Shown piece by piece: positions 42,641-53,418 of a stretch of DNA of 64,000 bases. Both the position numbers and the translations under genes were made by a program. This DNA comes from Piromyces finnis finn (taxonomy: Eukaryota; Fungi; Neocallimastigomycota), in assembly GCA_002104945.1 (NCBI GenBank), contig MCFH01000009.1, positions 1-64,000 on the forward strand. Direction: 5' to 3'. The notes beneath the pieces were generated by a model. The model worked only from the letters and a program-made list of their open reading frames with translations. It ran no database searches and was not told the origin of the DNA. Position 1 is the first letter of the stretch; the number at the start of each line of letters is the position of its first letter.

Positions 42641-44605
42641 TTAATGGCATAAGCAGTTATTCATGGTGTTTATAAGTATCCAATCATCATTATCACCATC
42701 TAACTCCCACATCATTACTCCAGCATATCCATTTTCTTGAATATAATTCATTTTTATTTTTAAAGATTGAGGATCATCATATGAAATGAAATTATTAAAT
42801 TTAGTGTTAAAAAGATAAGGAGCTTGAGCTATGGAATCCCAAACTCTCAACCAACAATCATATTGAATAATGCCATTACTTTCATGAAGAGAATAATTAA
42901 ATGGATCATCATTCTCTTCTCTTTCTCCACGATCTTCTCTTAGAGAAAGAATATACTTGTAAATATATTTGTATCTCCAAGTAGAAGAATGATCTAATTT
43001 ATCTTGTTGACAATAATTAAACCATTTTGGGTGATAGTCATCTTCTCTATCATAAACTGTATTATCGAAGGTTTGGAATAATCCAAGGTTCATTTTAGTA
43101 TTAGAAATCCATGATCTTTTCAAAAAAATTATATTAAAAATACAATAATTATTCATATAAGCATTAACTTTTTTTTTTTTGGTTTTTTTTAACAGAGCTT
43201 TAATTCTATGTTCTATTAAAATATACCTTCCATAAGCACCAACACCTATAACAAGTTTTTCTGGTGGAAAACCACGTTGAACCCAATTTTCAACAGATGA
43301 TTTAAAAGAAAAATCATGACCCTTTTCAGGTTTTTCAAAAGATTCATGATGAGATATTATTGAAGACCATGATCCACTAAACTATAAATAGATTAATTTA
43401 GAAAAATTAATATTGCCTAATATTTTTAATATTTAACTAATATAAATACAAAAATGTTTTTTTATTCTTATTTTTATTAATAAAATTAATAATAAGCTTA
43501 CATCATATGCCATAATATTAACAAAATCAAAATACTCAGCAAATTCAGATAAATCATTTAAAACCCTACCATTTTTTTCGAATGGTGTTATACTTACAGC
43601 AGCGGTAATTAATATACTATCGCCAAGAGCTGAACGAAGTTTCTTAAGAAGTATTAAATAATTTGGGGTATCATTGGCATAATCAGGACTATTATAAAAG
43701 TAATAATAATTATAAATATTATTATTTATCATTTGTTTTTAATACATCAATATAATAATACATAATATATATTATTATACTATTATTAAATATTAAAATA
43801 ATTCTTTCATGGTTTTATATTATTTATACTTACTTATTATTATTACTATATCTTCCAGGATATTCCCAATCAATATCAATACCATCAAGTTCTAAATTAA
43901 AAATAGTAGAACGAACACTTTCTACAAAAGCATCCATATTTTCTTCAGTAGAAGTCATTTTAGTAAAATATTCACTTCCACTCCAACCTCCAACAGATAA
44001 AAGAACTTTAACATTTTGTTGATGAGCATATGTGATAACATTTGATAAAATTCTTGAATTATATCCGACTACTTCAAATGATTTAGAATCAATAACACCA
44101 AATGCTTTTAAAAATAAAATATAATTAATATATATAAATATTAATATAACATGAAAAAAAGGATAAATAATAGCACAAATAAATATAAAATGAACTATTT
44201 TAAAAATAAAAAAGTACCATAATTTATATGGGTAAGTTTATCATAAGGTAATTGAGATGGAAGAATTTCTGCTGCTCTCCATTCAGTATAATATGCTATA
44301 ATATTTTTTGAACATGGATTTGAAGTATCAAATAAAATTTCATCATAATCTTCTTTGTAATCATTTTCCTCTTCTAAACCGTCTGTTTTTTGGATATCAT
44401 CCATAACAACTTCTGTTGGGTGTTGATTATCACTTAATGAAATAATTTGTTGATTTTTATTTAAAATAGTATTTTCAATTGGAACTGCCCATACTTCATT
44501 AATTCCATTATTATTTACAATATTTTTACCCCAAAAACTATAAATATCATTAGATAAATACAAAAGTGTTAAACTATACACTAAGTTTAAAAAAAATATA
44601 TTCAT
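42641..44605 (-). CDS. Secreted GH18 chitinase without dockerin or CBM (5 exons)
   Basis: Signal peptide, IIAYYTEW, KLTHINY|AF, KVLLSVGGW, intact catalytic DGIDIDWEYP, DFVNIMAYD, KLVIGVGAYG|RSW, FISYDDPQS and GYAGVMMWELDGD. Confidence 0.93.
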
Positions 44606-45379: not shown

Positions 45380-47198
45380 TTAGCAAGAACTCTTGATGAT
45401 GCACCTAATTTTTTTAAATACGTTTTAATTTATATATTAATAACACTAAATTAATAGTAATTTAAAATATATATTAATTTTTATTAAAAAAAAAACTTAC
45501 CAATTATTATTTTCAACACCCCACTTAAGACCATCAGATTGGTCAACAACATTACATCCATTACAGCATTCGTATTCAGATGTTGGGCAATTTGGATCTT
45601 CGGTGGCATTTGAGTTTGAAGAACAAGTATCAGAAATAGCACACCATTCATTATTGGCAATACCCCATTTACCTGTTTCATCAGTGTAAACTACATTACA
45701 ATCCTTACAGCATGGGTAACCAGAAGTAGTGCATGAATCAACTGAAGTTGAAGACTTGCATGAAGTTGGGATACCTATTATTTGCAATAAAATTTTTAAT
45801 ATTTTTTTTTAATTACAAATAAATATATTTTTTTATATTATACATTTTAATTATTATCCACACTTACCACACCAGTCACTTTCATAACCCCAATCACCAT
45901 CACTATCAGTATAAGAAACATCACAACCCTTACAGCATTTGTAACTACATTAAATAAATTTCATTAAAATTAGCAAATTAATATAATTTAATAATATATA
46001 GCAAGAAAATTTATTTACTCAATCATCTTAAATATTATCATTACCCTAATTTAGTTGACCAGCAAGAATCTGTAGTAGATCCACTAGATTTAGTGGTGGT
46101 AGTGGTAGTGGTAGTTTTAGTGCTAGAACTAGAGCTAGAACCATCAAGCCATGGGAAATCAGTTGGCTTAACTCTGGCACCTTCACTTGGTGGAGCACCT
46201 TCTGGACTCTTTGGACTACCACACATAGTTTTCTTATTTTCAAGAAGACCTGGGTTAACTGGACAACAACCCCAGTATGGAGTCTACATAATATTAAAAA
46301 ATAATATATATATTTATTTTATTATACTATTATAATCAACTATTAAAAAAAAAGTTAATGTTTAATAAAAACTTTAAACTTACATTAGTACCAGAGAATG
46401 ATTTAACATCATCTGACCAACCTGGCCATTCTTCACAAGAAACTAATTCAAAGTTAGCTTGCATGTGACCACCTTGGAACCAGTCTCTTAATTTACCACC
46501 CCAACTATCAATGTTAACCTTTTAATAATAAAATAAATTTTAAATTATTAATATTATAAATATATTATAAATATAAAAGGAATGATAATTAATCTATTTA
46601 TTATATAATAGTTTCTATTATAGCATACATCAAAGTGATTTGCAAAACCATGATCGTTTAAGCCACCTTCTGGACCTGGACACCATTCCATATTAGATTG
46701 ATGTGGACATTCATCTTTTATATACATATTATTTAGTTTTATATAATTTATGATTATTATTTAATAATATTATCATCTAAATATTTTAAATTACCAGTAA
46801 CTCTGAAAACAATTGGTTCTGGAATTGGAGAAAGAGGTTTACCATCAGCAGTAGCAAATGGGGATAAACGATAACCTTTTCATATTAATTAATTTTATTT
46901 AATATATAATCAATTATATTACTATAATTTAAAAAAAAAAAAAAAGAATAGAAAAAAAATATTTACATAAACCACAAGCTGGACCACTACCAAAGTGGTC
47001 AAAAGCACCATAAGCAACTTCAGCTAAAGCAACAGTAGGACCTACAACCATAGCATTTGGAACACAATTACAAGCTAAATTTTCGTGAGAGTAATCAGTA
47101 TACCAAGTCATACTAGCAATACCTTCCTTAGCCCATGTCCAAGCAAGAGCTGAGGAGAAAAGAGAAGAAGTTGCAACAAGAATTGATTCTAAACGCAT
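45380..47198 (-). CDS. Secreted double-psi beta-barrel (GH45/expansin-like) endoglucanase with Ser/Thr linker and three fungal dockerins (8 exons)
   Basis: Spliced reading: signal peptide, [24 protein letters not shown]...GSGPACGL|CYRL, IVFRVT|[23 protein letters not shown]|VNIDSWGG...[24 protein letters not shown], a T/S linker and three CC-x-C...WG-x-E...WC repeats. There are seven phase-consistent GT-AG introns. Confidence 0.88.
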
Positions 47199-51279: not shown

Positions 51280-53418
51280 ATGAAATTTATTGAGCTTATT
51301 TCAATTGCTTTAGCAACTACTAGCGTTTATGCTCAAAGTTTTTGTAGTTCTGCTTCACACTCTGGTCAAAGTGTAAAGGAAACTAGTAACAAGGTCGGAT
51401 CCATTGGTGGTGTTGGTTACGAATTATGGGCTGATAGTGGTAATAACAGTGCTACTTTCTATTCTGATGGTTCTTTCTCTTGTTCTTTTAATAATGCTAA
51501 GGATTATTTATGTCGTTCTGGTCTTTCTTTTGATAGTACTAAGACCCACTCTCAAATTGGTCACATATACGCTGACTTCAAACTTGTAAAACAAAACATT
51601 CGTAATGTAGATTATTCATATGTTGGTATTTATGGTTGGACTAGAAACCCACTTGTTGAATTCTACGTTGTTGATAACTGGCTTAGTCAATATCGTCCAG
51701 GTGATTGGGTTGGTAATAAGAAACACGGTGATTTCACTATTGATGGTGCTAAATATACAGTTTATGAAAACACTCGTTATGGTCCAAGTATTGATGGTAA
51801 TACTCAATTTAAACAATACTTCAGTATTCGTCAACAAGCTCGTGATTGTGGTACTATTGATATTACTGCCCATTTCCAACAATGGGAAAAACTTGGTATG
51901 ACCATGGGTAAAATGCACGAAGCAAAGGTTTTAGGTGAAGCCGGTAGTAATGGATCTGGTACTAGTGGTACTGCTGATTTCCCATATGCCAAGGTTTACA
52001 TTGGTAATGGTAATGGTAACACTAATACTAACACTAACAATAACAACAACAATAATAATAACAACAACAATAATCAATGGGGCAATAATCCATGGGGTAA
52101 CAACCAATGGGGTAATAACCAATGGGGTAACACTGGTAACACTAACACCAACACTAACACCGGTAACGGTAAATTCGAACTTCTTAAGGACTATGCTAAA
52201 GACTTTAGAATTGGTGTTGCTGCTAACACAATGAGATTCAATAATCAAGCTTACAATGAAGCCTTAAAGGCTTTCAACTACATGGTTGCTGAAAATGGTT
52301 GTAAGTTATCTGGTATTCAACAAAGACAAGGTAACTACGATTTTAGTGATTGTGATAATCACTATAAGAAGGCTAAGGAATTAGGTATGGCTTTCCGTGG
52401 TCATGCTCTTATCTGGCACGCATACATGCCATCTTGGTTTGAAAATGCTAATGCTTCAACCTTAAAGAATGCCATTGTTGAACATGTTACCAAGGTTCTT
52501 CAACACTACGAAGGTAAAATTGATACTTGGGATGTTGTCAATGAAGCTATTGATGACAGTTCAAATGGTAACGGTTGGAAGATGCGTAACTCCTTCCTTT
52601 ATCAAAAGGTTCCAAACTTTGTTGATCTTGCTTTTGAAACTGCCCGTAAGGTTTCTCCAAATACTAAGCTCTTCTACAACGATTACAATACTGAAGGTAT
52701 TTACGGAAAAACTGAATCCGTTTTCCAATTCGTTAAGGACATGAAATCTCGTGGTATTCCAATTGATGGTGTTGGTATTCAATATCACGTTTCTGTTGAC
52801 AGTCAACCACAATACAACAAGATTGATGATTTAATTTCTCGTTACTGTGGTCTTGGTCTTGAAGTTCACATTACTGAACTTGATGTTAAGTGTGGTAGCC
52901 AATGTTCTTCATCTAATGTTGAATCCAAGCAAGCTACTGTCTTTACTAATGCTTTAAAGGCTTGTCTTAACAATTCTTGTTGTACTGGTTATCTTGTTTG
53001 GGGTGTTGGTGATAGCGATAGTTGGTTAGGTGCTAACGAAAAGGGTTTACTTTTCAACAGTAACTACCAACCAAAATCTCAATACACAGCTGTTCTTAAT
53101 GTCTTAAAGGAAACCAAGCCAAAGGCTACTACCACTACCAAAACTTCTCAACCAACCACTTCTGCCGGAAAGTGTTCTTCTAAGATTACTAGCCAAGGTT
53201 ACAAGTGCTGTGCTAGCAATTGTGACGTGGTTTACGTTGATAATGATGGTAACTGGGGTGTTGAAAACGATGAATGGTGTGGATGTGGAACTGAAGCTAA
53301 CGTTTGTGTTGGTCCAAAGGGTTACAAATGCTGTAAGACTACCTCCCAAGTTTATGAAGTTGATTCTGACGGTAAATGGGGTATTGAAAACAATGATTGG
53401 TGTTTCATTAAAAATTAA
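51280..53418 (+). CDS. Intronless bifunctional endo-xylanase: signal peptide, GH11, Asn/Gly/Trp linker, GH10, Thr linker, two fungal dockerins
   Basis: GH11: YVGIYGWTRNPLVEFYVVDNW...FKQYFSIRQ...HEAKVLGEAG, with both catalytic Glu present. GH10: AENGCK, FRGHALIWH, WDVVNEA, LFYNDYN, IDGVGIQYH and HITELD, with both catalytic Glu present. Two C-terminal dockerins. Confidence 0.96.
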   Translation: MKFIELISIALATTSVYAQSFCSSASHSGQSVKETSNKVGSIGGVGYELWADSGNNSATFYSDGSFSCSFNNAKDYLCRSGLSFDSTKTHSQIGHIYADFKLVKQNIRNVDYSYVGIYGWTRNPLVEFYVVDNWLSQYRPGDWVGNKKHGDFTIDGAKYTVYENTRYGPSIDGNTQFKQYFSIRQQARDCGTIDITAHFQQWEKLGMTMGKMHEAKVLGEAGSNGSGTSGTADFPYAKVYIGNGNGNTNTNTNNNNNNNNNNNNNQWGNNPWGNNQWGNNQWGNTGNTNTNTNTGNGKFELLKDYAKDFRIGVAANTMRFNNQAYNEALKAFNYMVAENGCKLSGIQQRQGNYDFSDCDNHYKKAKELGMAFRGHALIWHAYMPSWFENANASTLKNAIVEHVTKVLQHYEGKIDTWDVVNEAIDDSSNGNGWKMRNSFLYQKVPNFVDLAFETARKVSPNTKLFYNDYNTEGIYGKTESVFQFVKDMKSRGIPIDGVGIQYHVSVDSQPQYNKIDDLISRYCGLGLEVHITELDVKCGSQCSSSNVESKQATVFTNALKACLNNSCCTGYLVWGVGDSDSWLGANEKGLLFNSNYQPKSQYTAVLNVLKETKPKATTTTKTSQPTTSAGKCSSKITSQGYKCCASNCDVVYVDNDGNWGVENDEWCGCGTEANVCVGPKGYKCCKTTSQVYEVDSDGKWGIENNDWCFIKN

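Follow-up and report, generated by a model that had tools for sequence, protein, structure and literature searches.

A dockerin-bearing GH45-type protein of Piromyces finnis with a subfamily C-like scaffold and an aspartate at the subfamily A/B base position

An eight-exon gene and its truncated public record

The window analysed here, a 64,000-nucleotide stretch of contig MCFH01000009.1 of Piromyces finnis with a G+C content of 19.9%, carries on its minus strand a gene for a cellulosomal GH45-like protein of a type that we call AGF1. From its N-terminus the protein runs through a signal peptide and a domain of some 204 residues to a Ser/Thr-rich linker, which is followed by three CBM10 fungal dockerins. 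Its catalytic domain, a double-psi beta-barrel (DPBB), carries the active-site inventory of GH45 subfamily B on a scaffold clearly nearer to subfamily C, a pairing that is unusual. AGF1 thus departs from subfamily C in one defining feature, and in similarity it falls outside subfamily B. The gene is laid out as follows.

45380..47198 (minus strand): whole gene of the AGF1-type protein; 8 exons, 7 introns, 382-residue precursor
47198-46967 (minus strand): exon 1, signal peptide and start of the DPBB, up to GSGPACGL and the first base of a Cys codon
46875-46795 (minus strand): exon 2, opening with the rest of that Cys codon and closing with the first base of the Asp105 codon
46714-46629 (minus strand): exon 3, the Cys107-Cys116 clamped loop, Asn112, Asn124, His126, His131 and Asp133
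46519-46628 (minus strand): intron 3, its donor directly after H-F-D
46518-46384 (minus strand): exon 4, VNIDSWGG..., the last core strands of the barrel
46283-46045 (minus strand): exon 5, C-terminal extension of the catalytic domain, then the linker and the start of dockerin 1
46044-45945 (minus strand): intron 5, which splits dockerin 1
45944-45868 (minus strand): exon 6, main part of CBM10 dockerin 1
45774-45501 (minus strand): exon 7, CBM10 dockerins 2 and 3
45500-45405 (minus strand): intron 7
45404-45380 (minus strand): exon 8, last residues and stop codon
47198-47142 (minus strand): signal peptide, residues 1-19, hydrophobic by direct reading
46149..46283 (minus strand): Cys-rich C-terminal extension of the catalytic domain (...MCGSP...KPTDFPW), first part of exon 5
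46068..46148 (minus strand): Ser/Thr-rich linker, about residues 224-250, read directly from the translation
45868..46067 (minus strand): dockerin 1 (CBM10), Pfam CBM_10 E 6.4e-8 on exon 6
45380..45774 (minus strand): dockerins 2 and 3 (CBM10), then exon 8; Pfam CBM_10 E 5.7e-19, two stretches in exon 7

Joined by coordinate in a script, the exons give an open coding sequence of 1149 nt for 382 residues, and all seven introns are of the GT..AG type. The splice model is supported by orthologues on intron-free contigs of 1.2-1.7 kb, which come from metatranscriptomes and transcript assemblies and hence represent transcripts; they are collinear with the spliced model and show no gaps at the catalytic-domain junctions. 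Exon 2 was matched when a family profile was run exon by exon on the P. finnis genome (locus L010), and exon 4 is supported by the same family profile, both in its alignment to the PDB and at a genomic locus (L003). An original prediction, made from the DNA letters, had quoted several peptides with their coordinates, and each is present where it was placed once the minus strand is read and the exons are joined by script. That prediction confined the feature to 46284-47198, a span that holds only exons 1-4 and closes with intron 4; the gene reaches 45380, and the catalytic domain extends into exon 5.

The public model of this gene is truncated. ORX55235.1 (BCR36DRAFT_182494, Piromyces finnis, 157 residues) agrees with our model at every residue from 1 to 134; its continuation, "VCYNRNYY...", is translated intron 3. 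The donor of intron 3 was missed, and because of this read-through the public record lacks 248 residues, comprising the last barrel strands, the C-terminal extension and all three dockerins. The record, found in the 90% cluster of the orthologue P0006, is described as a "hypothetical protein" and carries the UniRef name "Expansin-like EG45 domain-containing protein". Similar public names are borne by the orthologues of Neocallimastix californiae, N. lanati and Pecoramyces ruminantium, so the guess that the gene would be auto-annotated only as expansin-like or barwin-like is borne out by names that are either expansin-like or hypothetical. Intron 3 is also retained in an orthologue contig from a rumen metatranscriptome (L025), which reads "HFDVCFLR".

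Pfam matched three CBM_10 modules, and likewise three CBM_10 stretches in the orthologue P0006; tandem CBM_10 modules stand at one end of a secreted protein, the arrangement by which fungal dockerins of cellulosomes are recognized, and the prediction of a cellulosomal protein with three dockerins holds. Elsewhere Pfam was sparing. EXPB1_D1 matches exon 1 (residues 28-76, E 2.5e-5) and exon 3 weakly, and neither Expansin_C/CBM63 (the D2 domain) nor PF02015 (Glyco_hydro_45) was matched on the exons or on orthologues; what follows the barrel is a Cys-rich extension of about 55 residues, conserved in all three AGF clades described below and in a basidiomycete family.

Scaffold and active-site residues

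Profile and structure work was carried out on orthologues as proxies, with exons joined locally for alignments and trees; the proxy for the catalytic domain was P0006:20-223, 94% identical to the domain in the window. Four partly independent measures support a scaffold that is predicted to lie closest to subfamily C, with subfamily B ranking below C in every comparison.

First, a ten-member family profile searched against all PDB sequences matched PcCel45A (E 4.2e-18, positions 7-150), GtCel45A (E 1.5e-15) and, over part of the domain, the subfamily B enzyme EG27II (E 3.9e-10); it returned no expansin, no subfamily A chain and no MeCel45A (1WC2). Single exons gave chance-level matches to the PDB, except for a weak match of exon 3 to EG27II (5xbu), and are uninformative because they are too short alone. 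The HMMER alignment to PDB entry 3x2l also bears out the PcCel45A strings given in the original prediction, namely GQASFTMYS, AAINQLAFG, GAGDACGRCFAL, IVVKVTDLCPVQGNQEFC, NQHGMPFHFD and FTEVSCSQWSG.

Second, an AlphaFold2 model of P0006:20-223 from a 129-sequence alignment (mean pLDDT 73.7, pTM 0.78), which supersedes an unusable earlier model from 10 sequences (pLDDT 48.8), was compared with the PDB by Foldseek. Subfamily C ranked highest (E 6e-11 to 1e-9), followed by subfamily B (5e-8 to 4e-7), expansins (about 6e-5), loosenin and cerato-platanin, and finally subfamily A (above 6e-3).

Third, VIA-align placed the model on PcCel45A and GtCel45A with Z 20.1-20.3 over 168 residues at 2.6 Å and 30-32% identity (model 1-185 against chain 5-177), on MeCel45A and EG27II of subfamily B with Z 13.9-14.2, on expansins with Z 9-10, on subfamily A with Z 6.6-9 and on the loosenin PcaLOOL12 with Z 7.4. 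In the orthologue model a six-stranded DPBB with C-type loops and the C-terminal extension superposes on PcCel45A and GtCel45A.

Fourth, the nearest cluster in language-model features was a basidiomycete "Endoglucanase V-like protein" (0.95), with a mollusc endoglucanase cluster at 0.91. The four measures agree with the subfamily C-like scaffold that had been proposed from the DNA letters, and the superposition of a predicted structure on PcCel45A, run with the orthologue model, gave a Z of about 20.

Three sites carry the argument about the active site.

47108-47094 (minus strand): T31-W32-Y33-T34-D35, with the Asp35 codon at 47096-47094; aligns with T16-M17-Y18-S19 of PcCel45A
46694-46692 (minus strand): Asn112, the loop Asn, within C107-P-H-Q-S-N-M-E-W-C116, which aligns with C87..N92..C96 of PcCel45A
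46637-46629 (minus strand): H-F-D, with the Asp133 codon at 46631-46629; aligns with Asp114 of PcCel45A

Residue equivalences were taken from the profile-to-PDB alignment and read in the PcCel45A numbering of PMC5829257 and PMC10909974. On this numbering Ser29, Thr31 and Tyr33 correspond to Ser14, Thr16 and Tyr18; Asp105 to Asp85 of subsite -2; Cys107, Asn112 and Cys116 to Cys87, Asn92 and Cys96; Trp115 to Phe95 (Trp in GtCel45A); and Asn124, His126, His131 and Asp133 to Asn105, His107, His112 and Asp114. The alignment thus shows that the predicted equivalents of most proton-relay and sugar-binding residues of PcCel45A are kept (Ser29, Thr31, Tyr33, Asp105, Trp115, Cys116, Asn124, His126 and His131). 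The catalytic domain also contains ten Cys, the number required for the five disulfides of GtCel45A.

The position two residues after the conserved Tyr (Tyr+2) is the base Asp in GH45 subfamilies A and B and Gly in subfamily C (PMC10909974). Asp35 sits there, at Tyr33+2, where subfamily C has no acidic residue, and for this reason we do not file the protein as plain subfamily C. In the AlphaFold2 model the TWYTD motif occupies the end of strand 1 (6-14, domain numbering) and the start of the next loop, as described for GtCel45A. A 61-residue N-terminal profile found no useful match in the PDB and so gave no alignment of TWYTD to a subfamily B structure. The other two sites follow subfamily C: the acid Asp, which in that subfamily stands at the end of strand beta-5, lies in an H-F-D that is invariant across the AGF clades, and the clamped-loop Asn (Asn92 in PcCel45A, Asn95 in GtCel45A), proposed to act as an imidic-acid base, is invariant in AGF1 and AGF2. 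Within AGF1, TWYTD is present in 44 of 45 orthologous sequences and in eight more rumen metatranscriptome contigs, while the Asn and HFD are invariant in every sequence covering those sites. The one departure, TWYTN, occurs in protein P0175 (in the cluster of P0008) and may be a natural variant or a sequencing error.

Set beside the characterized enzymes, AGF1 shares with PcCel45A (3X2L/3X2M) and GtCel45A (8BZQ) the S-x-T-x-Y start, the VTD-x-CP...N...C clamped loop, N-x-HG, the HFD acid, VSC..W.G and the Cys-rich C-terminal extension. It differs from both in having Asp35 where they have Gly20 and Gly24, respectively, and from subfamily C enzymes in its linker and three CBM10 dockerins and in belonging to Neocallimastigomycota rather than Basidiomycota. 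With the subfamily B enzymes EG27II/AcCel45A (5XBU) and MeCel45A (1WC2) it shares a small DPBB in which the Tyr+2 Asp, the loop Asn and the acid Asp occur together; these are clearly more distant overall, with a Z of about 14 and an E of 4e-10 that covers only part of the domain. For AcCel45A/EG27II, the base role has been assigned to Asn112, with the Asp as a third residue of importance (bioRxiv 10.1101/2025.10.08.681111). The description of the protein as a mechanistic intermediate ("mechanistic INTERMEDIATE") was therefore overstated, the Asp/Asn/Asp triad being the published subfamily B configuration.

Paralogues and the origin of the aspartate

An exhaustive search of exon 1 against the representatives of a 1.84-billion-protein library returned three proteins only, including P0002 (379 residues) and P0003 (341 residues), and word-index searches retrieved full-length AGF1 orthologues. 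These come from Neocallimastix, Pecoramyces, Piromyces and rumen metatranscriptomes, in keeping with the claim of a GH45-type DPBB outside Basidiomycota: the gene is from Neocallimastigomycota and its orthologues are in anaerobic fungi. No PcCel45A-type or subfamily B protein was among the word-index matches listed. A metagenome scan yielded a canonical subfamily C sequence (L091, E 1.6e-29 to GtCel45A, 8BZQ), a partial C sequence (L067) and an A-like protist sequence (L092), and no subfamily B sequence. L092, on marine metatranscriptome contig Ga0073972_11404594, is an open reading frame of at least 620 residues, open at the contig end, in which Cys-rich repeats at the N-terminus precede a GH45 domain of subfamily A-like type starting TTTRYWDCSGGACGC; this start combines an A-type TRYWD with the GACGC string of subfamily B enzymes.

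A profile search of the P. finnis genome (56,455,805 bases in 232 contigs) found three loci of the C-like dockerin type, namely AGF1 and two paralogues.

Contig C113:682513-684184: AGF2 paralogue, two dockerins; exon 1 reads ...ASVTRYGSMGILSCNC
Contig C155:585077-588277, positions 2071-169 (minus strand): AGF3 paralogue (L005), three CBM10 dockerins plus a CBM1-like QCGGDGYFGPTECC module at the C-terminus

AGF2, at about 50% identity, reads T-R-Y-G-S with a loop two residues shorter than that of AGF1, and keeps the Asn and HFD; two dockerins, the Asn and HFD are likewise present in its orthologues P0003 and P0012-16. AGF3 reads T-H-Y-E-L, CPYPDNKEWC and YHFD. Both paralogues share the scaffold, the Asn, HFD and the dockerin targeting of AGF1, but neither has the Tyr+2 Asp, and their predicted active sites are of a straightforward subfamily C type. 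An additional intron lies in AGF3 directly after ...ASMTH.

The same genome holds at least 12 loci of the classical anaerobic-fungal GH45 (PF02015, subfamily A, Piromyces equi Cel45A type), all of which read T-R-Y-W-D. Such proteins bear dockerins, as AGF1 does, and we considered and rejected the assignment of AGF1 to them: PF02015 is unmatched, Z to subfamily A is 7-9, and those genes lie elsewhere in the genome. Of 13 PF02015 genome matches, 12 lie in open frames without a stop; the AGF1 gene has seven introns. Three PF02015 genes lie within 17 kb, on both strands, at contig C57:558299-574799.

Outside anaerobic fungi, the closest family among the word-search matches listed, at 30-35% identity, is a large, widespread and well-conserved Agaricomycete one of about 250 residues (P0019 of Thelephora, GLOTRDRAFT_58604; P0019-P0132), variously named expansin-like EG45, RlpA-like DPBB or endoglucanase V-like. 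LVSCEEW.GW and a GCCP.NP C-terminal extension are common to it and the AGF clades, but it differs from AGF1 in reading T-H-Y-x-(L/I/M) and N-F-D, in a loop Asn that is not conserved and in having no dockerins; it is probably not a hydrolase of the AGF1 kind. Most of its members end in a hydrophobic tail resembling a glycosylphosphatidylinositol-anchor signal.

In maximum-likelihood trees, AGF1 is sister to AGF2 (support 97/90 and 96/92), followed outward by AGF3 (89/62), the canonical C sequence L091 (93/92), L026 and, last before the subfamily A outgroup, the basidiomycete family. The three AGF clades thus adjoin canonical subfamily C with support of 93/92, in a tree that holds one C sequence, no B sequence and long branches. 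The loop after the conserved Tyr differs in length between clades.

These trees bear on how AGF1 came by Asp35. The original prediction held that the protein retains the subfamily A/B base Asp; the Asp is indeed present at Tyr+2, but "retains" is doubtful, as the trees nest AGF1 among Asp-less lineages. A gain is the more parsimonious reading because AGF1 is nested among lineages that have no such Asp: AGF2, AGF3, the canonical C sequence and the basidiomycete family nearest to it. Retention would make the clade a surviving intermediate with the ancestral A/B base Asp, which the rest of the C-like lineage lost once. The approximately unbiased (AU) test does not reject the tree that this implies, with all Asp-less sequences grouped and AGF1 beside the subfamily A outgroup (delta lnL 5.97, p 0.186), and subfamily B, which bears the Asp, is a structural neighbour of C (Foldseek, VIA-align; PMC5829257). 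The best trees speak otherwise: AGF1 is sister to the Asp-less AGF2, and AGF3, the canonical C sequence, L026 and the basidiomycete family, all Asp-less, branch outside the AGF1+AGF2 pair, so that on the best topology retention needs about five independent losses in place of one gain; the varying length of the post-Tyr loop also argues against it. We regard retention as not very likely. On alignment and trees, a secondary gain appears the likelier of the two, and the choice is unsettled because the AU test passes the retention tree, branches are long and no subfamily B sequence is in the tree. A bolder reading, plausible though less likely than not, is that AGF1 regained an A/B-type carboxylate on its C scaffold once duplication had split it from a sister without the Asp; P. 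finnis and its relatives would then hold natural plus-Asp (AGF1) and minus-Asp (AGF2, AGF3) versions of one enzyme with the same dockerin targeting.

Candidate function and significance

We think it probable, with considerable room for doubt, that AGF1 is a secreted, dockerin-anchored GH45-type DPBB with the C fold and an active inverting endo-beta-1,4-glucanase of the B/C type, in which the Asp probably arose only once duplication had parted the gene from its Asp-less sister paralogue. The three CBM10 dockerins would anchor the secreted protein to the anaerobic-fungal cellulosome. Asp133 would serve as the catalytic acid, and the base function would come from Asn112, Asp35 or both, as in subfamily B, where both residues matter. 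Substrates would be amorphous cellulose and mixed-linkage or other beta-glucans, met within the cellulosome. We infer the endoglucanase activity from the conserved residues together with the fold.

Several points weigh against this reading. The PcCel45A relay residue Gln93 is replaced by Met in the P. finnis protein and by Ala in orthologues. EXPB1_D1 is the only Pfam match of the DPBB domain. The model depicts an orthologue with 94% identity to the P. finnis domain and is of moderate confidence, with residues 45-51 and 182-204 below pLDDT 50, and the placement relative to fungal subfamily B (TrCel45A type) comes from PDB and Atlas comparisons only. In the literature, anaerobic-fungal proteins that combine a DPBB with CBM10 are filed as non-hydrolytic and expansin-like, and have been assayed as synergistic and non-lytic (PMC12632131, PMC12954947).

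The last point is one argument for regarding the protein as a non-hydrolytic, loosenin- or expansin-like cellulosomal helper, one that would loosen cellulose or hemicellulose and boost cellulases while its GH45-like residues only bind. We hold this to be unlikely, yet it keeps a real share of probability because the activity of AGF1 is deduced and the papers treat DPBB proteins with CBM10 from these fungi as non-hydrolytic. The public names "Expansin-like EG45" and "RlpA-like DPBB" and the match to EXPB1_D1 point the same way, as does the nearest large outside family, the Agaricomycete one, which lacks both candidate bases; a lone DPBB also recalls loosenins in architecture, but in AGF1 both base candidates are present. 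Against a helper role stand a Z of 20 to true subfamily C hydrolases, compared with 9-10 to expansins and 7.4 to a loosenin, the lack of a CBM63/Expansin_C domain by Pfam, and the conservation, invariant across genera, of the acid Asp and loop Asn, of the His and Asn residues of the relay and of Asp105 at subsite -2. We reject the EXPB1_D1 match as a sign of an expansin, since L091, a genuine sequence of subfamily C, scores 179 bits with this model. The published proteins themselves, NcaEXLX1 (PMC12954947) and PFSWO1_1 and PFSWO2_1 (PMC12632131), resemble AGF1 in joining a DPBB to CBM10 dockerins in anaerobic fungi; those of the NcaEXLX1 type have D2/CBM63 and lack the catalytic base, whereas AGF1 has no D2 and the full residue set of GH45 B/C. 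The architecture of PFSWO2_1 (CBM10, CBM1, DPBB) resembles that of AGF3, and a protein of AGF3-like architecture could not be expressed (PMC12632131).

A hydrolase acting mainly on hemicellulose is also to be weighed. Enzymes of subfamilies B and C act on a broad range of beta-glucans and on glucomannan, and a C-like scaffold with a repositioned carboxylate might be directed at xylan, xyloglucan or glucomannan. The single-domain expansin-like protein GtEXPN_133317 of Gloeophyllum trabeum is reported to need Asp25, near but not at the A-type base position, for xylan cleavage (bioRxiv 10.1101/2025.10.08.681111 / PMC12846793). We judge this very improbable for AGF1, in which the PcCel45A residues lining subsites -2, -1 and +1 are conserved; moreover, the xylan activity of GtEXPN_133317 is very low, and its relevance to expansin wall loosening is disputed (PMC13415893).

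Two further genes lie near the endoglucanase candidate. About 4 kb from it, an intron-free open reading frame of 712 residues (51280-53418, plus strand) encodes a bifunctional cellulosomal xylanase, with Pfam matches to GH11 (E 1.5e-40), GH10 (E 5.3e-91) and two CBM10 dockerins. Directly downstream lies a multi-exon gene (42641-44605, minus strand), in which one open reading frame, 42641-43156, has a Pfam match (E 1.2e-14) to the C-terminal portion of GH18 chitinases and the first-exon frame 44195-44605 has no Pfam match alone.

Subfamily C has so far been described as a set of basidiomycete enzymes without the classical base that use an Asn-based proton relay, and where it should be divided from the non-hydrolytic expansins and loosenins is under active debate. 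Anaerobic gut fungi have a conserved, expressed and dockerin-bearing C-like lineage, labelled expansin-like in databases and in recent papers, in which one of three paralogous clades carries the A/B-type Asp. Counts of GH45 genes in fungal cellulosomes have probably overlooked such genes. In practical terms the gain is modest: another small, possibly robust endoglucanase module for designer cellulosomes. Authors on GH45 and on expansins continue to disagree over whether Asn, through an imidic-acid relay, or Asp is the general base in B/C-type GH45, and the AGF1/AGF2 pair, if both are active, would allow the two residues to be compared in a natural setting.

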